Shown: piece after piece, positions 4,830-60,223 of the stretch
Position numbering within the stretch: the stretch's first letter is position 1
Layout: every line of letters starts with the position of its first letter
From: Oopsacas minuta
Lineage: Eukaryota; Animalia; Porifera
Reading direction: 5' to 3'
NCBI GenBank assembly: GCA_024704765.1
Contig: JAKMXF010000316.1
Coordinates: forward strand, 310,001 to 374,000
DNA: 64,000 nucleotides
The notes under the pieces: generated by a model
The model's database searches: none
Seen by the model: the letters and a program-made list of their open reading frames with translations, nothing else
What the model was told of the DNA's origin: nothing
Position numbers and translations under genes: made by a program

Positions 4830-6494
4830 AAATTTATGTAGCTAACATGTGCAATATTTCAATTAACAATTCCCTAATTTTGTCAATGCAAACTTAGGGT
4901 TCACATATGTAACACAGAGTAGCGGACGAGGAGCATCCACACGAGGATATTTACACATGATATGAATCATGTGGTATTAAAAATTAAGTAAATACATTGG
5001 AAAGTTTGCTCAAATTGCAAACAGTAAATTATCGACAAGCTTCCCTCGGATTTCATATCATGTTATTCTTCCGAAATCTAAGGTATATACCTTGTATTGA
5101 TCTCCCGACAGAAATTGCGTGTACTCTAATGTGGGTATGTACATTATTATGAGCAAAACAACACATAAATTGGTTATTGTACTTTTGTCCAATTTTAAAC
5201 AAAAGTTATCATTATTAGGTAGTAAATAAAATTAATTCGAAGTGAGACAGTGGAAATGGAATATTGTAGGGCCAGTGGGCTTGTTGTCCAGGGGTTTCGA
5301 TGATATTGAGTTAAGTTTTGAGGGCCATTGAATGAAGGTATTCAAGTGTACTTAAATAAAGTTATTCTATAGCTGCATACCTATCTAGGGGAAACGCGGA
5401 ATTTGTCCTACAACCAATATCGGAAATTGTTCAACACTGTATTGGAGTTTTAAATTGAAAATAGTTCAGTGTTTGTCGCTGGCATTGTAGTTTAGATTCA
5501 CACCAAATAGGTGACGATAATAAATTAATAGTGTTTGTATGATATTCATTGCTCGTATGTTATTTGAAATTTAGGCCCAACAAGTGTTTATGCATTCTAG
5601 ATCTGTGAATTCGACTTTTATGCAATTGTTTATCAATTTATTGCAAAACTTCTCATAATCCCTAATTTGATTTCGTCGAGAATCTGAGCGGTCATCTTCA
5701 AAAAGTTGAAAAGTAGTATGTGCAAGAGGAGAGAAGACTATTGCATCCTAAAGTATCTTCTACAGTATCAGAACTTCGATCAAAGATAATAACAATCTTG
5801 GCATTGTCCGAACAATTTGTAAACAGTCATTGACAGAAATCAGATTTCAATTATTTTTGGGTCAAGTTGTATGAGCAATGCGTGAAATCAATTAAAGTAC
5901 ATATATTTTGATGGAACTATTAAAATTGTTCCGGATTTGGTATAGGAGAAATTCCTACATCTAGATTAACGTAGGACAAGTTCTTATAAAACTGATTGTA
6001 GGACAAAATCCCGCTAACACTATCTGGGTATACTTGTATGCAGTAGTATTCTTATCTGCACAATTGCACAAGACTTTATCACCAAATGATTGAAATTATG
6101 ATCATGTGATAAAAATTATGCATCTTATAAATAACTATTTTGTCCATTCATTAATAAACATAGAAACCTCAATCAAAATGATGTCTATTGAGTGATTTGA
6201 TAATAATAAAGGAATGTTTCCGAGAAACGGAGATTCTCTATAAGGGACAACTGCCATGTGTCAGTTACCCGGAGAACCTAATCTATCGTATACAACTATC
6301 GTTTCCCTCTATAAAATAATATACGCAGGACAAACAAACAAATACAATAATAAGCACACTAATTGAGTTCTAAGTAGAAATTTATAGATTTACATCAAAA
6401 TTAGAGATGCAAATTCGAGGTCACAATGGCATTACCTGGGGGCCAATGGAAAAAAATTATGCACTAACAGTATTGTAAGCACTAGGATTCGCAG

Positions 6495-9256
6495 CAGGGC
6501 CGCAGCTGGGGGGCTAGGGGGCTGAGCCCCCCCTACCAAATTTAACCATCCCGTAAATTTTGCTAAGCTATATTGATCTTTACTCTTAGATCTTGAATAT
6601 TAGTTAAATCAAGGAAATGTTTGTGAATATGTCAAATTGACTATACTTCTAGTTATCTAATTCCTATTGCTAGTTAATATACTTAATTCATTGGATGCTC
6701 TTACAGCGACCATTGAAATTATATTTTTGTTTTTATATGACCACAACATATATTCCTTCCAGTTTATTACATTTGATATGCGAATTGTGAAATCATTCCT
6801 CATGGCTATAATCACCATACACAGAAACACGTAGTCTCTTGATTTTTTAAAATGATCAAGAATCCTCCTTTGATATTTTCTTATAATGCAAATAATTTTG
6901 TTCCTATTCTTTCTCCTTTTAATTTTAGTTCTGTCAAATTGTTAATAATTTTGATTTTCTATTCAATTTAGTTAGTGATTATATTACTATGGATAATTTT
7001 ATTTCCTTTGATAGGTCTCTTTCTGATCCCTTGAATAGTATTGAAATATATAATCCGATCAACAAAGAAATACCAGATATATCTACTGGAGGAGGAAACA
7101 TTATACAAATTAAAGGATTGATTTATCCGAAGGATTCTATTGGCCGTAGTTTTCAACAAGATTGGTTTATTAGATTTCCTTGGTTGGAATATTCACCATC
7201 CCTTGATACGGTATTTTGGTATCCCTGCCGTCAATTTCTCTCACACGGGACTAAAGAAAATGTCTTCAAAAACATTGGATTTAAAAATTGGAAATCGGCA
7301 ATAGAAAAAAGAAAAGGACTTTGTAAACATGCTGATTCTCGTGTTCATCTTACTGCAATGGCGAATTGGCGTGAAAAAGAGCTTCGCGAATCATCCCAAC
7401 TAGAAATAGCTACATTAGTTTGTGCTAATGTTTTTGAAAAAATAGATATTACATACGGTCCATTGCTGAAATTGTTCAATTTTTAGCTGTCAATGAATTA
7501 GCTCTGCGTGGAAATTATGATATTGATGAAAATACGGGGCATGGATTCAGGAACTTGTTTGAATATACACTTACAAAGGACCCGAAACTCGCTGAAATTT
7601 ATACACAAATTCCTAAAAATGCTCATTACCTTTCTCCAGATATTCAAAATGATGTGATAGATATTATGTCGGAAGTAGTTAGGGAAGAAATTATTTTTGA
7701 AATTTTAGATGCTGATGTCCCGTGGTTTACTTTATTAGAAGATGACACTAGAGATCGCAACAATATAGAACATGTATCAATTGGAAATAGCTATGTTAGG
7801 AAAGATAAAGTTTTTGAATCTTTAGTTAATGTAGCAACAACTCTCTCTTCAGATGCCAAAACCATGGCTAATTCAACATTGGAGATCTTGAGAAATAATG
7901 GATTGGATTCTAAACGATTACTTTCACAGTGCTATGATGGCGCTAGTGTAATGAGTGGTGGAAAAGGAGGTGTTCACACCCTCATTCAAGAGGAATTACA
8001 TCGAAAGGTTCCGTATGTTCATTGTTTCAACCATCGACTTCATTTGGTAATTATGAAATTAATATCTGAAGTCCCAGAACTCAAGATATTTTTTGACCAA
8101 TGTAGAATGTTACACTTATTTCTGAATCATGTCAAAGTTATATCAATTTATACAGGAACTCGTATTGGTCGTCTTTTAGAACAAAGATGGTCAGGACATT
8201 TGAAAATCACTGAAGCTATTTATTCTAACTATTAAACTATTATTGAATTGCTTAGAACAGTCCAATGCTCCACAGAATTTAGTGGAAAGCAAGTTGTACA
8301 GAGTACTGGTTTGTTGGCCACACTAATTAAGTTAGAGTTCCGTTTTTGGTTTGATATTAATGAAAAAGCTCCTACTTACAATAGAACCAGTAGATAAGAT
8401 CTTACAATCCCGTGATGCATGCTTAAAAAAGCCATGGAAATTATCAATTCTGATTTAAAAACATCAATAAGCTTCAAAATCCAGATGCATTTAGTGGGAT
8501 AGTTAGCGAGGCCAAAAGTATACTACTGCATGATGAAGATGATATGTCTCGTCCAATTAGACGCAAAAAACCTAACTGTTTATATAACCATTATATTCTT
8601 ACCGAATCTACAACAAAAGAACATGATACGTTAGAATCACTATTCATAGACACAATTCATATAACATGCCGTGAATTCAAGAGGAGATTTTTCTTGAATA
8701 ACATGTTATTACAAGCAGTTGATTCGATCGAAGAATTGACATTGATAAGTTGTACCCTTTATCAGAGCTTGGGATTTCGCTTCCCTCAATTGAGGAATTG
8801 TCAGTAGTAAAGGAATTCACGAAAGATAAAACGAATATACTCGAAGAATTGTACAAGTATCGACAGCTGTTTAATAACACATATAATTTGGTTGCTACTG
8901 TAGCAACGTTTTGTTGTAGCACTTCTATGTGTGAGTCTTCGTTCTCAGTTCTCACTAGAGTTAGTAGGCCACAGAGAAATATGTCGGAAATCAGATGCTC
9001 CAATTTAGTGTTTCTTGCGTTTGAATCTAGATATATGAAAAAATGGATGTTGAAAAGTTCCCCTCGAAATTTTCTAGGAAGAAGGATAGAAGACTCAGTG
9101 TATTTTAGATATTACATAAATTTATGAGATTAATATAGAACTGTAGCTCATTAGTTCATTGGCCTCCCCAAAAATTAATATAAAAATCTTAAGTATCCAA
9201 GCCCCCCCTAAAGATTACTTAGCCCCTCCTAACACTACGCTCTGGCTACGGCCCTG
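6495..9256 (+). mobile_element. hAT transposon with degenerate ZMYM1/ZNF862-like transposase
   Basis: TIR CAGGGCCG(C/T)AGC at both ends; 8-bp TSD ATTCGCAG/ATTGGCAG (7/8). ORF pieces: 6989-7486 (TTF-type Zn finger WFIRFPWLEYS..GFKNWK), 7555-8235 (QCYDGASVMSG, YVHCFNHRLHL), 8750-9127 (dimerisation motif STSMCESSFS). Confidence 0.9.
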
Positions 9257-33068: not shown

Positions 33069-33780
33069 CACAGTGGCTTAGTAGTAAAGAATTAAGAAAT
33101 TTTTATAGTAATGCTTTCATTCCTTTATGGTTTCATTGTGTTTCTAAACATTCAAGTAGCATCCATTCCAATTTTCGAATCATTTGGTAGCCATTAGTTA
33201 TGTAAATTTGAATCGAAACTTTGTGGTTTTTGATGCTGAAATTATCGTTTCGGAGAATTTAAAATATGCAAGATATTCACATTGATTCTGATTCTTTATA
33301 GAATATATTAGTGATCTATTGTTTCATCTATTCTGGACAATTTTGCATGCTGATTTCAAATTTTGTATCAGATATATCCTAAACTGTGTACTTTTCATGT
33401 GAAGGAATGTTGTACCCAGGGTAATAATGAATCCCAATTTTCCATCGATCAAATTTTGAAAGTGTCTGAAAGAAATCTCAAGGAACGTCAAAGCGAAAAT
33501 AATACCAGTTGTTGTTTACAATTTATACTATGTTATATGAAGATGACAAGCCCCGAAACAGTGCGCAACTTTGATCTTTTGGTCACATTCCATTGTTTAT
33601 AATCGTTGCTATGGAAATTCCTAAAGTGATATATGTGACTATGTAATTGAATACCCGTCTAATCCCAATTCTTCTTGGAAATTACTGCACAAAATTAAAC
33701 ATATATACGTGTGTATATACGTGTACTTGTGTTTTCAATCAAACACCTATATTTTCTCATAGATAATTTATCCGTGATCA

Positions 33781-35940
33781 ATGGCTGAACCAATTGCTCC
33801 GATGACTCCCTCCGAATCCCGTCTCGATTTAGCGAGAATCCTGAAAGCAAATGGCAATTGCGTCGAAAGAACTCTCTATTATCTTAGCGATCTCCATGGA
33901 TTAGACGATGCCAAGCAGGCTAAACTTGAATTGATTTACGTAGAATACGAGATATGATTAGAACTTCAAAGAAATCACTTGAATCTTTGCATGGAGATTG
34001 GTGGCATTCTGAAATTTGCTCAGAATTATTTATAGCTTCACAAACCCCCCAAAAACTAAGTCGGTGCGCCAAAAGAAATAACTTATCAATCTTTCATTGC
34101 AACATCAGCGTTCCAGCATCTCTAGTGTCCTTGAGTCTATCAGGTCCATCTCGGTAATCGAAAAAACTCCTGAAATTACAATTGCAGCTCTTGCTTTGCA
34201 ATTGTCGTGCAATGAAGAAGACAATCGAGAAGTTGAAAGGGTATCTAAATCAATTGTGCAGGGAAAATTCTCTGGTCAATTCGGGCGTGCATCCAAAAGC
34301 AAAGAATTGGATGTGGAGAGGCATTATTTCTTTTGGATCTACTAGAGATTGGCAGGAGGAAGTATACTCTACTACGAAAACTTTTGTTATCTAATGAAAT
34401 TCACTTTCCTACATATCAAAGGGTGACCGATCATAGAAATAATTTAGTACTACAAAGTATGATTCAACTACACCCGAATCCTACAGCCCCAGTTGGTGTG
34501 TGTGTGTGTGTGTGTGCCATACGCTCAATTTGTCTACCATACATTTTGTAGAATTATGTCCACTCTACCGTCCCCTTCAAATGAGGATTTTCCTATCCGA
34601 TTTCAGATTGCTGATGGCTTAGATGGATCTGGAAAGCATACCGTACATAATCAACCAATACGAATACATCTACCAAATCGTCCATCCTATTTGCTTCAAA
34701 GCAATACACATTTTCAATTCTAGTGGAAGGAACCTTGGAAAAACAACTACCCGAATTCTCTATTCTCCCAACGTCCAATTTTCCTTCTTGCTGCCACAGA
34801 AAATCGTGACAATATTCACCAATTTATGAAAGATATCATCAATCCCGAAACAGATCAACTGAAGGACCAAGGTTTCTATTTTGCCGATGATAAACATATG
34901 TTTGTCGATGTTGTCCGATCAATGCTTGATGGTAAAATGGCAAGTATTCTCTCAGGAGCAGGAGGTGCGAGTTGCCAACTATGTACTGCAACGCAGAAAG
35001 AACTAAAAGATCGTGATTTATTTTTGCAAGGCTATCCCATCAATAGAAACATTTCAGACGCCATTCAATTATTTGGAGAACTGGAAGACGTTGATGTTTT
35101 CTTTTCATTACCAACAAATCAAAGATTTAACCTGACTCACCAACCATTGTCAACAATAGATATTCTACCTGCTTCTCCCTTACATTCCTATACGTGCATT
35201 TTAGATGGTTTAATTTACTTGTGTACCACCTGAATTGTAACAAGCTCACATGGTCGCCATCATCAAAAGAAATTAAAGACTCTATGATGGATGTGCGAAC
35301 CATAGTTCAAGAAGTAACAGGTCTAAGAATTGACCAACCAGACCCCAAAGGAGGTACTACTTCCATTGGTGGTGTGGCTCGAAGAGCTTTTTCAAATGAC
35401 TCCAAGTTTATTGAATGCGCAATGTCTTTGGTTAAGATTGATCATAAGGACTCACTTTGTAAATTGCACACACAATTATCTGTCATTCTGAGAATCATAA
35501 ATTCAGACAGAAAAATTGGGTAACCTTTGTACAGACACCTATCTCCTTATACCTCAATCCTTTCCCTGGGTGAACATTACACCGACTTTACATAAATTAC
35601 TAGCCCATTCTGGAGAAATACTGAGAGAGATGAACTTTGGGTATGGATTGAAATGCTTTAGCGAAGAAGGATCCGAAGCCTGCAACAAATTAATCAGGAA
35701 ATATAGGGAACATCCAGCAAGGAAAACTTCCTTCGAGGGTAATCTCATTGATATATTTGTCAGACCCTCATCTGAGAGCGATCCTGTTTAATGAAATATC
35801 GATCGACAGTGGTGTGCGAAAAGTGCGGAGAACACGGTCATACCCGAAGAGCTAAGTGCTGTAGAGACAATGCAACAGATTTATTAGAATCATCTATTGA
35901 TAATATCGTCAAGTGCCTTATTATTGATACGATATTGTAA
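33781..35940 (+). pseudogene. RAG1-like/Transib transposase pseudogene
   Basis: Frameshifted motifs in order: QIADGLDGSGKH, PNSP-like, LDGKMASILSGAGGASCQLC, PLHSYTC, ITPTLHKLLAH, SEEGSEACNKLIRKYREHPARKTSF, tail CEKCGEHGHTRRAKCC. All parallel ORF 56046-57992. Confidence 0.9.
34496..34516 (+). repeat. (GT)10 microsatellite inside the copy A transposase
   Basis: GTGTGTGTGTGTGTGTGTGTG at the junction of ORFs 34333-34551 and 34493-34723. Confidence 0.95.
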
Positions 35941-36497
35941 CAACGTAGTTTGCTGAATGTTAGTGAATAAATAATGCAATAAAACATCCCTTAATATAAG
36001 TGCTTATTGTTTTTATCCAGAAATTGTTAGAATTGATATATATATTAGCAAAAAAGATATGAATAAATTCTAAAAACGCATTTAGAAGTATTAAGTACAA
36101 AAGCAAAAATTGTGTAGACGTCATTTTATAAAAATTATGAGTAATTTTGAAATTCTAACAGTTGTAATTGCCTCCATGGATATGATATACTATACCCAAA
36201 TAATACAATTTATAGGGCTAACATTGTTATACAATCAGATATTAAAGAAAAACAAATTTCAGCATATAGCTATGACGTCAGAATATTATATATAGAAACC
36301 TTATAAAAACTTTGAATGCACTAAATGATTCCTAGCATATGATAACCAATATGCTGATAATACATTATATATGTCTATTTCAAAATCAAAATACTCATTC
36401 TTTACTAACTCCCATTTTAAGCCACTGTGCAGATTCAGCATATGAATTCCATGTTTTCTAGAGTATCATAGTACCTCAAGTACAAATCTTGATTCTA

Positions 36498-51247: not shown

Positions 51248-53572
51248 ATGGATATCAGGCGATTCATTTCTGGAAAGCGGTCGAACAATAACCTACAAGA
51301 CATGGATGAATGTACATCTGAAGAGCTTTCACAGATAACAAGTGAAAGATGTTTGCCATCCTCCTCTCAAAATCCAGAAGTTACCAGGCATGATCCAACG
51401 CAACCTCATTCGAAAAAGTATTATATGTCATCTAGCGAGCAGAGATAGCAATATAAGGCTAATCTTTCATATAAAAATGAGTGGGAAAAAAATCTATCCC
51501 TGGGTAATTTGCGAAGATCCTAGAAAAGGTATGTTCTGTACCATCTGCCAGAAGTGGGGCAATCCATCTGCAGGATCAAGGGGCGCTTGGACAAGCAGGG
51601 GAGTTACTGACTGGAGTCATGCTACTGAACTATTGAGAGCACACGGAGAGTCACGGTGTCATAGGGATGCAGCAGTCACTGCTGGTATGTCAAAGCAGGT
51701 GGAGTGCGTGAAATCAGTACTTGAGCTGCAGTGTTCTGCTGCTGCAAAAGAGGCTGCATGCAGAGCAGAGAGGAATCGCAGCATCGTGCTTAAGTTAATG
51801 AGGTCAATCTATTTCCTAGCAAAAAACAAAATTCCTCACACCACTGTTTACCCAAATTTAATTGCCTTGCAAGTTGCCAATGGAGATGCATTGCTGGAAG
51901 AGCACCTCACTCATGGTGCTTCCAATGCTCAGTACACCTCAAAGTTCAGTGCAGTTATGCTTCTGGATGCTCTTGACACGTGGCTTGAAAGAAAGCAAAT
52001 ACAGAGTCTAAGGTCAAGCCCGTGTTTTTCTATATTAGCAGATGAGTGTCAGGATATTTCCACACAGGAAGAGCTATCAATTTGCTGCAGGTGGATTGTG
52101 GATGGCTATCGAGAAGAACACTTTGTAGATATACTCCATGTCAAGGATGTAGATGCTGCATCAATCACACAAGCTCTCACAACTTTCATTGAGGTGAACA
52201 ATCTCGACTATAGACGTTTAGTTGGGCAAGGCTACGATGGGACAGCAACTTTCTCTGGTTGTACAAATGGTGTCCAAAGAAGGATTAGGACACACTCAGC
52301 ACATGCAGTCTACATTGTGCATGCCACCGACTTCAGCTGGCATCTATTCAAGCTGCTGAGTCCATCACTATAATCAACAAAATGTTTGGCACAATGACCA
52401 GCCTGTGGAAACTATTCTACTATTCGCCAAAGAAAGCAGAAGCTCTCAAGGTCGTTCAGTCAGTTCTAAATTTACCTGAGCTGAAGGTAGTAAAGCCAAG
52501 CAGTACGAGGTGGTTGTCCCATGAGCGGTGTCTAAGTGCAATCCGTAAAGATCTTCCTGCTCTTATTATCACTCTCCAGCAGCTCTACCAGACGTCAGGA
52601 GATGCAGAAGCATATGGAATTTCTCTTATCTTGAGCTCCATATCCGGAGTAGCTAGTATTTTTCTTTTATCAGAAGTACTTGATCTCCTTGCTAGGCTTA
52701 ATTGCTACATGCAGAGACAGACTGCGGACTTTAGTAGGCTACCTTTGATTCTTAATAGCATTATAAAAGCGCTAGAGGAACTCAAGGAAGAAAAAACCGA
52801 CTGGTGTTCTAGAATGCTCACTCAGGTTGACCAGCTAGAGATCGATCATGGAATCATGATTACAATGAGTCGCTCAGCTCGTAGCTTTGTGGATGGTGCT
52901 AGTGTTGGATCTTTAACTGATTATCGTGACAAGGTTGTTCTTCCTTATGTCGATGCTTTACTACACAACATCGGCAACCGATTCTCGGGTGAAGCGGTAG
53001 ATCTCCTTGTATCATCCTCTGTTTTCAATCCAGCATCTCTTCCTTCAGAAGAAGCAGCTTTACCAGATTATGGTAAAAGAGAAGTGGAAGTTCTGGCCCA
53101 ATTTTATGGTAATGAAGCTATAGTTGTCCATAATGGTGTAACTTTCTCTTCTCCGCCACTTATTGACAAAGATGAAATTGCTATTGAATGGCGCTTGTTC
53201 AAGCGAGCATTGATTCAAGAATCAAGGTTGATCAGGGAAAAAAATGAGACTACCAAGACACCAAGCCTACAGGATGTCAAAGTTCACATGGAGTCATCTG
53301 GAGCTTACACTGGAATATTTCCAGAGATATTCAAGTTACTCAACATAATTCTTGTTCTTCCAGTAGGAACAGCTTCAGTTGAGAGATCTTTCAGCCACAT
53401 GGAGCAAATTAAAACAAGACTTCGAAATAGACTTAATGATGCTAATTTGGCTCATTTAATGAGGATCGCAATTGAAGGGCCAGAACATCCTCGGTTAACT
53501 TTGATGAAGTTCTTAAAGTATTTAAAGAGAAAAATCGTCGAATACAGTTATAGTTTAATATATAATTATTAG
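51248..53572 (+). pseudogene. hAT transposase, nearly intact but frameshifted
   Basis: ORFs 51248-51448, 51342-52373 (MFCTIC, SILADEC, QGYDGTATFSG; frameshift at the expected YIHC-CHR motif) and 52382-53572 (STRWLSHERC, PVGTASVERSFS..KTRLRNRL). Confidence 0.9.
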
Positions 53573-53620: not shown

Positions 53621-54959
53621 CAGTCTGTTACATAATTATTTGGAATCAAGGATCAGTTTATCATACGATCGGATTTACTCTTACACAATACTAAAATTGA
53701 CTAAAATATTCTCAAGAGGTGCATAATCAATATTTAATTGGTAGACCCCTTGAGTCAATGACCATTTGACACCTACGTGGCATTGAAGACCAATATGGCT
53801 CTAGAAAATTAGAATCTAGCCTGCTCCAGGTAATTTCCAGCATTTTCTTCAGCTCTGAAATTGTCTTTGGGCCTTGTTTAGTTAATTCTTGCTTAACCCA
53901 CGCGAACAGATTTTCAATAGGATTGAGATCGGGGCTTTGTGATGGCCACGGAAGTACTTTTGGTAACATAGTACTCAACCAATTCTTAACCTTTGTCGCT
54001 GTATGCTTAGGATCGTTATCCATTACGAGTTGCCAATCATTTCCATGGAAAACTTCAGCCTGAGTTAGGAGATGACCTTGAAGTATGTCTATGAATAATG
54101 AACTGTCCATATTAGTTGTAAATATGCACAAAGGGAAAGTCCCAATGGAAGAGAATGCCGCCCAAACATTTATTTTTGGAGTATGTTTAGTGGTAGGGAC
54201 AAATCTTTTCTGATCGGATTTTGTCCACATCTTCATTCGACCCCTGGACAGCCAAATCGACATTTCATCAGCAAAAACAGTCTTGGCCCATTGCTTTTTG
54301 GGGTATTTAAACTTCTTTGCCCATTGGATACGATACAATCGATTTGTTTCACTCAGCATAGGTACTTTTGTGGGATATTTCTTAGAATATTTGGAATCGA
54401 CTAAGGCTCGGCGTACAGTCTGGTAGGATACAGGTATAGGGGCTCTACTTGCCAATGTTCTTAATGATAAGTATGGTTTTTGTCTTATTTGTTGGCTAAT
54501 CGATTGTTTAATCCTATTTCTCAATGAGCATGGCCTTCCAGCTCCTTTTTGATGGGAGATATCAATTCCTTTTGCTAGTTTGGCCTTTACATAATATACA
54601 GTAGACAAGCTTACATGAGCAATTTGAGCAATTTCTTTTGAGCTATGGCTGTTAGCTTCTAGTAATAACTTGATAGTATTTCTCTTATCCAATTGAGCCA
54701 TCTGAAATAGCTAATACTTAAGACAAGAGAAGATAAATGGTAAACTTATGAATAATACGGAAGTGACGTCACAACTAATATTACAGAAGAGAGAAATGTT
54801 CGAGAAGTTGATTAATTGAACAAAATAAAACAATCGAATTACGTATGTACTATTATACAATTCAAAATATGCATTCACTTTCAAATACACAATGATTCTA
54901 TTAAGTTATGGTATACTTTCAAAGTATATTAAAATTCCGAATAATTATGTAACAGACTG
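53621..54959 (-). mobile_element. Tc1 element nested in the hAT 3' region
   Basis: 26-bp TIR CAGTCTGTTACATAATTATT(T/C)GGAAT; flanks TA / GA. Confidence 0.93.
53727..54701 (-). CDS. intact DD34E Tc1 transposase (324 aa)
   Basis: N-terminal HTH with GAGRP, VFADEM, MDNDPKH and WPSQSPDLNPIE, with 34 residues between the second D and E. No stops. Confidence 0.95.
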   Translation of the reverse strand: MAQLDKRNTIKLLLEANSHSSKEIAQIAHVSLSTVYYVKAKLAKGIDISHQKGAGRPCSLRNRIKQSISQQIRQKPYLSLRTLASRAPIPVSYQTVRRALVDSKYSKKYPTKVPMLSETNRLYRIQWAKKFKYPKKQWAKTVFADEMSIWLSRGRMKMWTKSDQKRFVPTTKHTPKINVWAAFSSIGTFPLCIFTTNMDSSLFIDILQGHLLTQAEVFHGNDWQLVMDNDPKHTATKVKNWLSTMLPKVLPWPSQSPDLNPIENLFAWVKQELTKQGPKTISELKKMLEITWSRLDSNFLEPYWSSMPRRCQMVIDSRGLPIKY

Positions 54960-55184
54960 GATATTGAAGTATCACACATAGCATCTTTGTTGTAATGTCA
55001 CACGTTCAATATTGTTATTTAATACACGACAAACAATAATAACCTACTCAAATTCAAGATTTCTGGGGGGGATAATTGTGCTTGGGTGGGGAAGGTTCCA
55101 GGGGCCCCCCTCTGTATGAAACCCTGTTCTGGGCCTGAAAATTTTTTGGCAATAGTCACAATACAGGCTCACTAACTAGTAGTA

Positions 55185-58100
55185 CACAGTGTGGCAATAT
55201 GGGGAAATAGGCATATTTTAAAAAACATATTTCAATGCATTTTTCGAACTCTCCATAGTTCAATTAGTACGAAAATATCATTGGCAGCATTAGAAGCAGT
55301 TAGGAATCCTAACTACGCACAACTTTGTTATGTGTTTCTAATAATAGAAATATATATTTTCAAACCTCAAATTCCTATGCCCTAATGTATGTAATCATAT
55401 TTGATGTAAATACTAAATATAAGAGTGAAAAACATCTTCTGATAATAAATCTATATTGTAACAACAATTTAATCATTGATAGGTTAGTCTAGATATTCAT
55501 TTGTACTTTTTTCCGGGTGTCTAGTTTGGCCCTCCCAAAGTTATAATTTCGAATTTTTTCTCATTGATTGAAGTGTAGCATCTCTTGTTTGACAAAATTT
55601 GACAAAACGTTATTAATATATACGTAATGTTACTATATTTAGTCAACTATTTAATCACTTTCCAGGCTTGCCAAAAGCTGCCCAAAAATTTATCACGTCA
55701 TTCATTGTCCGGACCGGACAAAAATCCGAAAAATATATTTTTCATACGTTTTAAATTTTTTCAGTAAAATTCTATATTTTGCTGGTTATTAGTTATTCCA
55801 ATACTCTACAATCATATATCATAATGTTTCTATGTTAAAGTAGCCCTTTTGCGGATAATGTCTGTACTAATCACCAACAATGAGGCATATAGTTTGTATA
55901 TTTCGAATAGAAGAAGTGTTACAGTCTCTGTTAGGAAACTTATTGAGAACAACCATTTATCCGAAGAAGAAACTGCTACTCTTCATTTAAAATTTAAATC
56001 ACTTCTAACATCCAGAGAGGCTTACCGCAGGAAGGATCTTGAAACATGGATAATATGATTTTCCACTCTACTCATCTAACAATATCCAATCCAAGAAAGA
56101 GAATATCGCTTGATCCTGAATTTTCTTCTTTAGTCACTGATTCTGAAAATCGAAACTTTTCAGAACAGAATGTAACTGAATCCCGGAAGCATATTCTCGA
56201 ATGTCACATGAAGACTTCCAGATCGAGACTTGGTGTTCTTTTAGAGCATGTGGACTTTTTAGCAGAGAGAGAAAAGATTGAGCCTAAACAACTACTCGCT
56301 CTAGCTTTAGAATTAGTCTCAAATATATCCTATGACCGTGATACTTCAGACATGTGCAGAGAAATAATTGATAAGGGATCTTTTAGCGGTGTATTGAACA
56401 AAGTACAAATCTCTAAATGTGCTTATATATTGGACAGATTAGAAATTGGGGCGAGTAAATACACGAATCTGAAAAGAATTCTCAAAGGTGATGTTAAGCT
56501 TCCTTCCTATAAACTTGTCTCGCAATATCGTAGGGAAATAAGCCTAATAAATGAAATGGAAATAGTCAGAGACCCCGAAGCATTGTCAATTGGGACTTGC
56601 GTCTCTTACCATTCCATCCTTAGTCTGACCATTCAACGATTGCTTTCAACATTAGACCCAGTTCCTGATTCACACTACCCACTAAAAATTAAGATATCTG
56701 ATGGGTTGGATGGCTCCGGTTGTCATCAAACCTATAACCAACAAAGCAACAATTCTGCATTAAGCACAAAAACTTTCATTTTGTTCGGATTCAAAGTAAT
56801 ATCAATTACAGACACACTTGGAAATGACGTGTTCTATAACAGCTCACCCAACTCTCCGTTCTGCTTTAGGCCAGTAGCACTGATAGCTCTGAAAGAAGAT
56901 TATTCTAGTGTAAAGCTTATCATGAATACAATAGTCAATCCTCAAACAGACCATATCATACAGGATGGGTTATCTCTTATTGGAGGCCATGCACAGGTCG
57001 AGATAGTCCGTTCCCTTTTTGATACCAAGATGGCAGGATTGCTGGATGGAGCTGGTGGGGCTTCTTGTCATCTGTGTACTGCAACGGATAGCCAAATTAA
57101 AAGTTTAGAATGGGCCCATTCTGGTTTCCCTATTAACAGACTAATTAGCGACGCTCGGCAACTTTTTGAAGAGGTTGATGAAGAAGATTACTTGAAACTC
57201 CCATCAAATCAACGTGTTGGTATTACGCATCAACCAACTTCTAACATCGATATTATAGCTGCATGTCCTTTGCATGCTTACCTTTGTGTATTCAGGTGGT
57301 TCATGCTGTTGATATACCATCTTGATGCAGGACACAAGGTATGGGCGCCATCAAACTCGAAAGTAAATTTTTCCATGAAACGGGTTCGAGCTATACTCCA
57401 GGAAAGATGTAATTTCAGTGTCGATATCCCTTCAAGCCAGGGCGGCACTTCAACCACTGGTAACATTGCGCGAGACTGCTTTTTAAATAAGAGAGACTTT
57501 TTGACGTGGGCCACTTCTTCCATTAATCCTTCAGATAAAATATCATTAGAGAAGATCCAGACAAATCTATCTGTTTTGTTAAGACTCCTCAACAGTGGTG
57601 ACTTGATTAACTGTGACAAAATGCAAGAATTGTGCAAAGAAACGTACGAATTTATTCTAATTGAGTACCCATGGGCAAGCATCACTCCATCTTTGCACAA
57701 GTTACTTGCCCATTCGTTTCAGTTAATAGGTGCTTATAATAATGGTAAGGGATTACAGAATCTCTCTGAGGAATGTTTAGAATCCTGCAATAAATTTGTA
57801 AGGCGGTATCGGGAGAATCTTGCAAGAAAAACTTCTTTCACTGATAATGTTAGAGATATTTTAGTCAGGTTGTTATGTTGTAGTGACCCCATCTTAGTAC
57901 AGAATCGTTTGATGCACGCAAAGAAGAAAAGAGACGTTGCAAATAGCCTCCAAGAGATATTATATAATAGTATACTATCAGATGATTTATGATAATAAGT
58001 ATATCCAATAGTCATACATAATTAAGGGTCTTTAAATTGTACGTTATCAAATAGCAGAATAGAGACCATGACATGCATGTATTATCAACTTTCATAATAT

Positions 58101-58298
58101 CCTCACTAATGAACCACAAGTGTTAAAAATTAGAAAATGTCAGTAATTACGTCATAACTAGGTTTATAGTCGTGCTACTAAATAATCATTGGTATTTTTG
58201 AAATCTACAGTGTCGATTTAGTATATGTAAGTATAACTGTGGCGATAATACAGATTCATTTATCTATTTCCCCATTATGGCCATTTTGCCACACTGTG
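55185..58298 (+). mobile_element. complete RAG1-like/Transib transposon, copy B (3114 bp)
   Basis: Ends CACAGTGTGGCAATATGGGGAAATAG and (rc) CACAGTGTGGCAAAATGGCCATAATGGGGAAATAG. Perfect 5-bp TSD TAGTA (55180-55184, 58299-58303). Confidence 0.95.
56046..57992 (+). CDS. RAG1-like (Transib-family) DDE transposase, 648 aa; probably extends 5' to ATG 55858 via a 1-bp frameshift
   Basis: ISDGLDG (D219), PNSPFCFRP, FDTKM (D326), CHLC, LHAYL, LHKLLAH, EECLESCNKFVRRYRENLARK (E579). These match RAG1 CDGMGD, PNSELCCKP, YDEKL, CTLC, LHCDI, FHKTLAH, NESGNKLFRRFRKMNARQ. Confidence 0.93.
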   Translation: MDNMIFHSTHLTISNPRKRISLDPEFSSLVTDSENRNFSEQNVTESRKHILECHMKTSRSRLGVLLEHVDFLAEREKIEPKQLLALALELVSNISYDRDTSDMCREIIDKGSFSGVLNKVQISKCAYILDRLEIGASKYTNLKRILKGDVKLPSYKLVSQYRREISLINEMEIVRDPEALSIGTCVSYHSILSLTIQRLLSTLDPVPDSHYPLKIKISDGLDGSGCHQTYNQQSNNSALSTKTFILFGFKVISITDTLGNDVFYNSSPNSPFCFRPVALIALKEDYSSVKLIMNTIVNPQTDHIIQDGLSLIGGHAQVEIVRSLFDTKMAGLLDGAGGASCHLCTATDSQIKSLEWAHSGFPINRLISDARQLFEEVDEEDYLKLPSNQRVGITHQPTSNIDIIAACPLHAYLCVFRWFMLLIYHLDAGHKVWAPSNSKVNFSMKRVRAILQERCNFSVDIPSSQGGTSTTGNIARDCFLNKRDFLTWATSSINPSDKISLEKIQTNLSVLLRLLNSGDLINCDKMQELCKETYEFILIEYPWASITPSLHKLLAHSFQLIGAYNNGKGLQNLSEECLESCNKFVRRYRENLARKTSFTDNVRDILVRLLCCSDPILVQNRLMHAKKKRDVANSLQEILYNSILSDDL

Positions 58299-60223
58299 TA
58301 GTATGCACATTACACAAGACTAAAACACTCATTTCAATACTGAACCACTATACTATACTATACTCGGCACAGTGAAGTTAATCCCTATACCACTATACGT
58401 GTATTGACCAGTTTGTTGGTCTATACCCAAGATGTAAACAAGATTTTGCTTAGGGGGGAAACGATTGATCACACCCTATAAAGAGCACTTTCCCATGTAA
58501 ATAGTATCATACATATTGTTATTGTTATCATAATACCTAATATTTGGAATTCTGGGTAGAGTCCCTGGGCAAACCTCCCCTCTATATGAAACCCTGATAC
58601 TAACAATCTGTTCAATCATACCTATCGTTTAATTTGAATCATTCCTCCATCCTAGTCGCTACGTAGTTATTTACTCATAATCATTTAGTCACGATTTGAT
58701 TTGAATATCTTCATTAAATATTATCCACATTAGTGCTGGGAAAAATGTCACTACAATACATTATATTATGATGAAATTTTAGAGCTCTATCTGAAAAATT
58801 CTCTCAAATATTTCAGATTTTGGCTAGCATCCCCTAATTTTGGCCTGAAATCACGCGGCCATAAGGGTAAAGTATATCCAAATACGCACACATTTAGTAA
58901 AAATTGATGAAATATGACCTATTATATGAATAGTATCTACTGTATGTTTATAACATGATGTATTTATTTCAGAGCCCTATCTTATATAGTTTTATGATAT
59001 TTGCTCTCAAAGGCCAACTTCTCAGTCCCCCTGCATGCCAGATTTTGGCTTCCAGAGGGGGGTACCCATGGAAATACCCATGAATTTGACACTATGTGGA
59101 TGGGCATCAACAATACTGTATTGTACTATGAGTATATGGACTAATTATGCATATATATAATGCAATTTGTAATAAATTGCTATTTTCCATGGGAAAAGTG
59201 GCGTTTCTTCTTCCTCGATTTACTAAAAACTTTTCAGCCACCATTGTCCCATGTCTCAAAATGCATAACTCAGCAAGTATACAAGCTAGATTCAAAACCT
59301 CAACGGTTTGGGGGAGATCTCACACCGTTGAGAAAAGTAAGTTGAAAGGATATACAATATAAGTTGAAATGTGAAATTTATTGAATTTTCAAATGTTACC
59401 CGGAGATAAATTGATAGATAAAGTAGAGTGAGGTATATGATTGCTCCTTTCTATAAATCGAAATTCTAATTTAACTTACTTTTCTTTCTAGGCGATTTCA
59501 AACAAAAATCTATTTCGATTACTGTTATATCCTTGCTCAACTTATCATTATATATTTTGAAAGTTTACCAGTTTCAAATTTCAAATTTTTTATTATATTT
59601 AGTTGTTAGTTATTATTGCCTTTTGGACACTCGACGATGTTCCAAAATCCTCCATAAATTTCAAAGAGATTAATCAACTAGAACTTATAGCAGATACGAC
59701 CCTATAATCCATCAGGTCCCTTTGCATATTCTCAAATACAAGATAGTGATAGAAGACTCCAACTATCTAATATTCTACAATCCAAGTTCTTTTCTTTAAT
59801 ATTATCATCTGGTAGGGAAAATTATTTGGGTATGTTTGTCAAAATATTGATGATTAATACTCCAATTTTGATCGATTACAATTTATTCCCATTATTCAGA
59901 TAAGTTCATCATAACTTGAATGCTGTTGTAGATTATGTCCAGTTTCTTACAGGAAAATATCAAATAAATACATTTCAAGTTACAATTTCTTACCAATTGA
60001 TAACACTGATCAACAGATTATGTGCAGATTTATGTGATTATTTATTTGCCTTCACAAATTGTATTCCTTTAGGATATATCGACTATCCTGATTCCGAAGA
60101 TACAATCAGTTTCTCAATCAGCTCTTGTTTTTCAGATATTGCAATTTTAAATTTCGCAATATTTGTAGATTTTCGGGGAATTCGATACTATTTCCCAGGA
60201 ATTTTAGATTTATATTGTATATA

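Follow-up and report, generated by a model that had tools for sequence, protein, structure and literature searches.

The window analysed in this study is a 64,000-nt stretch of the genome of the glass sponge Oopsacas minuta (GCA_024704765.1), and all coordinates below refer to it unless stated otherwise. At 55185-58298 lies an element of 3114 bp that is bounded by inverted repeats, carries one long open reading frame (ORF) related to RAG1, and is flanked on both sides by the same 5 nt, TAGTA, as read from the sequence at 55180-55184 and 58299-58303. It is very probably a single insertion of an autonomous DNA transposon of the Transib superfamily that is very young and present in multiple copies in O. 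minuta. The TAGTA duplication, the heptamer CACAGTG at both termini, and the long ORF had been pointed out in a preliminary description of this DNA; all three are present where it placed them, and its guess that the genome is that of an invertebrate was right.

Ends and coding region of the element

CACAGTG occupies 55185-55191 and its reverse complement 58292-58298. The bare heptamer is not significant on its own (12 matches against 5.5 expected). The outer 13 nt of the two ends, CACAGTGTGGCAA, are identical (box 1), and a second sequence, ATGGGGAAATAG, which is G-rich and then A-rich (box 2), is shared by both ends and found nowhere else in the window. The 18-mer CACAGTGTGGCAAWATGG has exactly 2 occurrences in the window, one per end and inverted, where 0.10 are expected. 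In the 5' terminal inverted repeat (55185-55210, plus strand), box 1 and box 2 (55199-55210) are separated by 1 spacer nt, and box 2 starts 14 nt from the tip. In the 3' terminal inverted repeat (58264-58298, minus strand), box 1 (58286-58298) is followed by a 10-nt spacer, AATGGCCATA, and then by box 2 (58264-58275), whose start is 23 nt from the tip. Counted from the heptamer, box 2 begins 7 nt past it at the 5' end and 16 nt past it at the 3' end.

The regions between the repeats are all described on the plus strand. The 5' non-coding region of about 650 nt (55211-55857) contains short ORFs only and is presumed to be the promoter and 5' untranslated region; a scan for sigma-70 promoters and terminators showed no enrichment, and such models are not meaningful for a eukaryote. 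In the sibling copies described below, the ORF of the family encodes 710 aa from a start equivalent to 55858. In the window copy this ORF is broken by a private 1-bp deletion in the G run at 56047, whereas contigs from other copies retain the additional G. The severed N-terminal piece (55858-56058) comprises codons 1-64 of the 710-aa ORF, two out-of-frame codons, and a stop, and its translation is 98% identical to residues 1-64 of P0062. The main ORF of 648 aa (56046-57992) restarts at an internal ATG; it encodes a Transib transposase without its first 64 residues and contains a domain resembling the nonamer-binding domain (NBD) of RAG1, a DDBD/pre-RNH/RNase-H core, ZnC2 and ZnH2, and a CTD. 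When alignment columns were mapped by reading the window, the catalytic codons were located at 56709-11 (D), 57021-23 (D), and 57768-70 (E), and the zinc-site codons at 57066-68 (C), 57075-77 (C), 57696-98 (H), and 57711-13 (H). The 3' non-coding region (57993-58263) has no ORF of note. The element had been called complete; the 648-aa ORF, however, is not the full gene of the family. No RAG2-like ORF was found in 55185-58298, where the remaining ORFs are shorter than 141 aa and mostly antisense or overlapping. The element thus has no second gene and, therefore, no RAG2-like partner.

Sequence, fold and relatives of the transposase

The protein was compared with solved structures, both as a single sequence and as a profile of 23 sponge family members. 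The single sequence matched HzTransib of Helicoverpa zea at an E value of 2.7e-26 and the amphioxus RAG1L at 4e-4. The profile scored 169 bits against HzTransib (E 1.2e-48), 81 bits against BbRAG1L, and about 55-62 bits against vertebrate RAG1, and it touched the isolated NBD of RAG1 at an E value of 0.009. Identity is 20-23% (about 22%) to HzTransib and 16-18% to RAG1. The fold was compared by using an AlphaFold model of the 710-aa form (mean pLDDT 84.5). HzTransib gave the highest Z score, 33.3, over 468 residues with a root-mean-square deviation of 2.8 Å (model residues 179-710 against 21-500), followed by mouse RAG1 with 32.1 (486 residues, 2.7 Å; 179-687 against 459-1007), RAG1 with its NBD with 31.4 (552 residues, 10.7 Å; 106-687 against 390-1007), and BbRAG1L with 27.7 (486 residues, 3.0 Å; 180-686 against 545-1108). 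The NBD of RAG1 alone was matched by model residues 105-171 with a Z score of 7.0 (67 of 68 residues, 3.1 Å; against 389-456). Foldseek agreed with these structural alignments. HzTransib (PDB 6pqn, 6pqx, and others), which serves as the biochemical and structural reference, is thus the best match in both sequence and fold.

Columns that are invariant in 28 distant homologues include D284, D388, E637, C403, C406, H613, and H618, and all of them (the catalytic D, D, and E and the CxxC and HxxxxH zinc residues) are kept in the window ORF, which bears out the earlier statement that it has all RAG1 core motifs. They align with D600, D708, E962, C727, C730, H937, and H942 of RAG1.

It is very unlikely that the element is instead a RAG-like (RAGL or ProtoRAG-type) transposon, or a solitary RAG1L gene, of the vertebrate RAG1 lineage. 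The NBD-like fold and the RAG1-length ZnC2 segment would fit such an origin, as would the ranking by Foldseek, in which mouse RAG1 chains came first by E value, and the C-terminal tail CX2CX3GH...C of the sister families, which is typical of invertebrate RAG1L (PMC10629977). Against it, the 3.1-kb element has no RAG2-like ORF (kelch, with or without PHD), and Pfam detected no zinc or RING domains of the kind that precede the core in RAG1. The profile score of HzTransib is twice that of BbRAG1L and nearly three times that of RAG1, and the identity to RAG1 is lower than that to HzTransib. The same RAG1-like traits are, moreover, known in Subgroup I Transibs (PMC9435367). The sequence and fold matches, together with the single gene, indicate that the element is a Transib and not a RAGL transposon. 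The preliminary description of a single-gene, RAG1-related cut-and-paste transposon with tips of the heptamer type seen in recombination signal sequences (RSSs) is therefore borne out in the form of a Transib. Its placement in the lineage of the V(D)J recombinase holds at the level of the RAG1-related superfamily and fails for the RAG1L/RAG2L lineage proper. The reservation that the element might nest within well-known Transib clades, with close Repbase matches, gained no support from the comparison with the characterised HzTransib, from which the protein is far removed.

The RAG1-like traits also bear on the kind of Transib involved. The NBD-like domain (residues 105-171) sits upstream of the beginning of the HzTransib structure. 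The segment from CxxC to PLH has about 49 residues against 14 in HzTransib, and the HzTransib alignment is broken between profile positions 404 and 453, whereas that of BbRAG1L runs unbroken through the segment. Tao et al. 2022 (PMC9435367) described Subgroup I Transibs from ctenophores, one Hydra family, and "bacterial" contigs, with a segment equivalent to alpha11-alpha12, a CTT1 tail, and asymmetric terminal inverted repeats as their traits. An equivalent of the NBD was reported in both Transib subgroups, and Subgroup I was regarded as closer to RAG1L (PMC9435367). The O. minuta family shares the alpha11-alpha12 equivalent, the NBD equivalent, and asymmetric bipartite ends with Subgroup I Transibs such as MleTransib_2823 and Hydra Transib-9_HM. 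It differs from them in that the CTT1 tail, CX2CX3GHX4C (CCGHC), which is typical of invertebrate RAG1L (PMC10629977), is absent from its C-terminus, and Porifera are not among the taxa named in PMC9435367 or its supplement. Sister sponge families have the tail, as do many outgroup sequences, so its absence here is a secondary loss. Judged by these traits rather than by phylogeny, the family appears to be a Transib of the Subgroup I type.

Among the "bacterial" Transibs with which the RAG/Transib tree was rooted are short contigs binned as SUP05, from isolates named SPONL and CRYPa (PMC9435367 supplement). One of these contigs is 4.5 kb long with a coverage of 5.4 and the other 3.2 kb with a coverage of 0.19; their genes were predicted by AUGUSTUS, introns included. 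This raises the question of whether they are bacterial or mis-binned DNA of a host or another eukaryote. Compared by eye, the SPONL protein shows no close likeness to the O. minuta family. The idea that the "bacterial" CthTransib_0091 of Tao et al. is a mis-binned copy from the sponge clade was dropped, since its protein is, by eye, very different.

The first 60-70 residues of the 710-aa model were modelled confidently as a small domain (residues 1-70), which also precedes the start of the HzTransib structure. This domain is conserved across sponge families and even in a relative from the krill clade that has only 25% identity. It has no confident structural relative; the only leads are weak ones resembling helix-turn-helix folds, with TM scores of at most 0.5.

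An exhaustive HMMER search returned 2274 representative proteins at an E value of at most 0.001 and 149 at an E value of at most 1e-30; the match ranked 150th still had 123 bits, which exceeds the 95.7 bits of HzTransib against the 648-aa window ORF. The closest relatives outside sponges, at 24-34% identity, come from marine metagenomes (Tara Oceans and others) and from one krill genome (Meganyctiphanes norvegica). A word-index search with a profile of distant matches returned sponge proteins only, a search with a plankton relative yielded a single named sequence, that of the krill, and a profile scan of 185,579 species genomes of bacteria and archaea revealed no relatives. A maximum-likelihood tree built from 51 sequences places all 20 from sponges in a single clade (SH-aLRT 100), within which the O. 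minuta families interleave with those of the ENA assembly ERZ25071281 and the studied family is a long lone branch beside CCGHC-bearing families. The tree contains no RAG1, RAG1L, or HzTransib sequences and thus supports statements within the clade only. ERZ25071281, with contigs of up to 2 Mb and many Transib families, is probably another sponge. Sponges therefore hold an old Transib radiation, and the studied family is one line of it that was recently amplified.

Copies, age and activity of the family

The window ORF is annotated in GCA_024704765.1 (P0061), and its 90%-identity cluster has 33 annotated proteins, several of them of 710 aa. A copy survey examined nine other loci encoding 710-aa forms, which with the window copy gives ten copies. 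All nine sibling loci align tip to tip with the window element, at lengths of 3111-3112 bp and with 99.4-99.9% identity. Any two of the ten copies differ by 0.06-0.64%. The window copy stands apart, with 0.51-0.64% divergence from the rest, and is the oldest of the ten. The 710-aa ORF is intact at nine loci, five of which encode one identical protein. The 5' end is the same in the other copies, except for one point change (L004) and one 1-nt deletion (L002). The flanks of the copies are unrelated to one another, and nine of the ten copies have perfect 5-bp duplications that all differ: TAGTA in the window, and TAGAG, AAGTA, CTTTA, GGCCG, CATTA, ATTAG, TGTGG, and CTTGG in eight of the nine siblings. 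The failure of the duplication to recur in other copies had been set beforehand as an outcome that would refute the preliminary reading; it recurs, with its own sequence, in all siblings but one. The copies arose by independent insertion of a mobile element and not by segmental duplication. Duplication in the assembly was also considered and rejected.

The copy survey also bears on the idea that the window gene is a RAG1-like gene domesticated by the host and functional at a single locus. The gene is annotated as an ordinary protein-coding gene, as domestication would have it. Yet inverted repeats and a duplication bound it, at least 10 near-identical copies stand at unrelated sites, a frameshift interrupts the window copy, in which a conserved residue is also altered, and its surroundings are full of other transposon remnants. 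Domestication is accordingly so improbable that we regard it as refuted by the survey, as far as sequence allows.

Read contigs from four public runs of one sample were also searched. The contig word depth within 55185-58298 exceeds the depth of the flanks by a factor of tens to hundreds. Contigs have loose ends with many differing flanks exactly at 55185 and 58298, two of which are recognisable as the flanks of L004 and L001. In three runs, the 3' tip (58298) is joined through CTTACCT to element position 57283, which represents a nested self-insertion (region 57277-57284). In run X4, the central coding part (56481-57576) has a summed contig depth about 10 times as high as the remainder of the element. 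The excess could come from related families in which this conserved part recurs, from derivatives with internal deletions, or from a library effect.

The ten copies differ at 21 sites in 979 nt of non-coding sequence and at 18 sites in 2133 nt of coding sequence. Variants are thus 2.5 times denser in the non-coding part (chi-square about 9, p about 0.003), and those in the coding part comprise 7 synonymous and 11 non-synonymous changes. This depletion suggests that the lineages with a working transposase were those that spread. A recently dead family, with young copies of which none is now active and with ORFs that have not yet decayed, is the chief competing explanation; it is unlikely, although it deserves more weight than a RAGL origin. 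At 0.1-0.6% divergence, intact ORFs can persist by chance, and no RNA evidence, empty site, or insertion polymorphism has been seen. It fits less well with an identical protein at five loci and pairs of copies down to 0.06% apart, with the depletion of coding variants, and with the nested insertion into another copy in the read contigs. We infer that the family is still active. Autonomous Transibs typically occur in one or a few copies (PMC4411706), so a family with at least 10 near-identical full-length copies is unusual among them.

The window copy itself has decayed further than its siblings. In addition to the deletion at 56047, it has a private 3-nt TTC insertion at 56123-56125, which adds one Ser, and the private substitutions G18R (in the severed piece, 55858-56058), I104N, K156I, and S469C (57264-66). 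S469 is conserved in at least 90% of the 23 family members and stands two residues before the invariant L471-H472. Loss of the N-terminal domain is unlikely to be harmless, because this domain is conserved across sponge families and in the krill-clade relative. With that domain cut off and the conserved Ser changed to Cys, the window copy is probably not autonomous. Both of its ends are intact, and intact siblings could therefore mobilise it. The preliminary description had judged the element young and near-functional, and this agrees with the pairwise divergence and with a copy that has one frameshift, few substitutions, and intact siblings. It had also proposed the copy for biochemical resurrection, which is unnecessary because naturally intact 710-aa copies exist at at least nine other loci.

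Several observations weigh against the view that the element belongs to a young, autonomous Transib family. Pfam alone fails to place the protein: the window ORF scores 22.5 bits against RAG1 PF12940, for which the cut-off is 25, and the 710-aa form has no Pfam match, while 15 of the 23 family members touch PF12940 at E values up to 0.01. Copy L007 lacks a matching duplication, with AATCA (L007:2323-2327) on one side and AATTG (5440-5444) on the other; a mutation in the flank or recombination between two copies could account for this. The target preference of Transib and RAG was reported as GC-rich (PMC1131882), whereas the nine duplications are not (G+C in 18 of 45 nt, or 40%, against 36.5% in the window), although nine sites are too few to be firm. 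No sign of transcription was found among the read data: the four runs that hold the element are probably DNA libraries, judging from their Nextera adaptor tails and contigs of 100 kb, and no RNA-Seq run is listed. Finally, the part played by the NBD-like fold and by the asymmetry of the ends, discussed below, is one that we infer.

The window is rich in transposon remnants at about 51-58 kb. An intact ORF of 324 aa for a Tc1/mariner-type transposase (53727-54701, minus strand; DDE_3 at E 1e-20, HTH_Tnp_Tc3_2 at E 1e-12) lies about 480 nt upstream of the Transib insertion. A hAT-like remnant at 51342-53572 spreads over two adjacent ORFs, with DUF4371 and a C17orf113-type zinc finger ahead of a hAT dimerisation domain, and a further hAT-like remnant with a DUF4371 ORF is located at 7555-8235. 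A second Transib, degenerate and of a different family, occupies 33069-36429; identity between its fragments and the ENA families P0018, P0019, and P0022 is 48-79%. Frameshifts are numerous in it, and its ends are CACAGTGGCTTA, a sequence that also bounds some of the families in ERZ25071281. Its C-terminal CEKCGEHGHTRRAKCC zinc-knuckle motif survives at 35791-35940, and the 5-mers that flank it, TCTCA and CAGAT, do not match.

End asymmetry and comparison with known systems

The ends were compared in five sponge families at 40-50% protein identity, namely the studied element, the degenerate element at 33069-36429, L010 of O. minuta, and L011 and L012 of ERZ25071281. At the 5' end, the tip and the start of the inner box lie 13-14 nt apart, against 22-23 nt at the 3' end, with an offset of 9 nt in all five families, the degenerate window element included. 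The added 3' spacer is loosely conserved among them: AAATGGCCATA, AAATGGTCAGA, AAAATGGGAGT, AATTGGCAGT, and TTTAGGCCATT. Conservation of the offset across families so divergent argues that it is functional. The ends of the plankton relatives L013-L015 gave no convincing inverted repeats, and the 9-nt asymmetry is thus established within sponges only.

The homology with HzTransib and RAG1 suggests how the element may move. The 710-aa transposase, with its RAG1-core-like DDE domain, would bind both ends through box 1, which bears CACAGTG, and the inner box 2. It would then nick the DNA at the border of the heptamer and form a hairpin on the flanking DNA, and the excised element would be inserted with a 5-bp stagger, leaving the 5-bp duplications. 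A dimer of the NBD-like domain may read box 2 at its two distances and thereby pair a 5' end with a 3' end. Taken together, the 9-nt asymmetry, the AAATGGNCA-like 3' spacer, and the NBD-like domain raise the possibility, which we hold to be rather doubtful, that a single transposase without RAG2 already enforces the pairing of a short with a long end, as a still-active precursor of the 12/23 rule. If true, this would place a natural proto-12/23 rule in a phylum that was among the earliest to branch off within the animals.

The evolution of Transib and RAG is usually argued from insects, cnidarians, ctenophores, deuterostomes, and a few disputed bacterial contigs. Sponges went unmentioned in the RAG/Transib literature that was searched, and in the O. 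minuta genome paper Transibs figure only as part of a RepeatMasker bin, "Other (Mirage, P-element, Transib)", which comprises 1552 fragments and 748 kb, or 1.22% of the 61-Mb genome. Judged from this literature alone, the element represents a new Transib family in Porifera of a known type. In this sponge the Transib families amount to a whole radiation, and at least one of them is very young, with several intact natural copies. In that family, an NBD-like fold and a RAG1-length zinc-domain segment occur together with asymmetric bipartite ends and without RAG2. It thus offers a natural enzyme-substrate pair for asking how end asymmetry is read without RAG2. The contribution of the CCGHC tail is also approachable, since the tail was lost in the studied family and kept in its sisters. 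The accepted picture of the origin of RAG1 is unchanged.

Among known systems, the element has in common with the Transib superfamily (Kapitonov & Jurka 2005, PMC1131882) a length of 3-4 kb, one encoded transposase of roughly 700 aa, CACWRTG-type tips, strict 5-bp duplications, and an RNase-H core of the DDE type together with a C2H2 zinc site. The Mnemiopsis element, whose ends were inspected by eye in the supplement of PMC9435367, also begins with CACAGTGG at its ends, and its boxes are about 5 and about 15 nt apart. In AanRAGL of the pelagophyte Aureococcus (Tao et al. 2022), the ends are likewise bipartite, and their outer element of 13 bp and inner element of 10 bp are 4 and 13 bp apart, which is the same 9-nt difference; unlike the O. 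minuta element, AanRAGL carries a RAG2L gene, and the box sequences of the two are unrelated. With the RSSs of V(D)J recombination and with RAG1, the element shares the exact CACAGTG heptamer, the RAG1 core fold from NBD to CTD, the 5-bp duplications, and the unequal spacing of the inner element. The likeness to RSSs that had been claimed for its ends therefore holds for the heptamer and does not extend to the 12/23 architecture: the ends have no A-rich nonamer, their inner box is ATGGGGAAATAG, and their spacing differs by 9 nt rather than 11. The O. minuta transposase also differs from RAG1 in its low identity and in working without a RAG2 partner.

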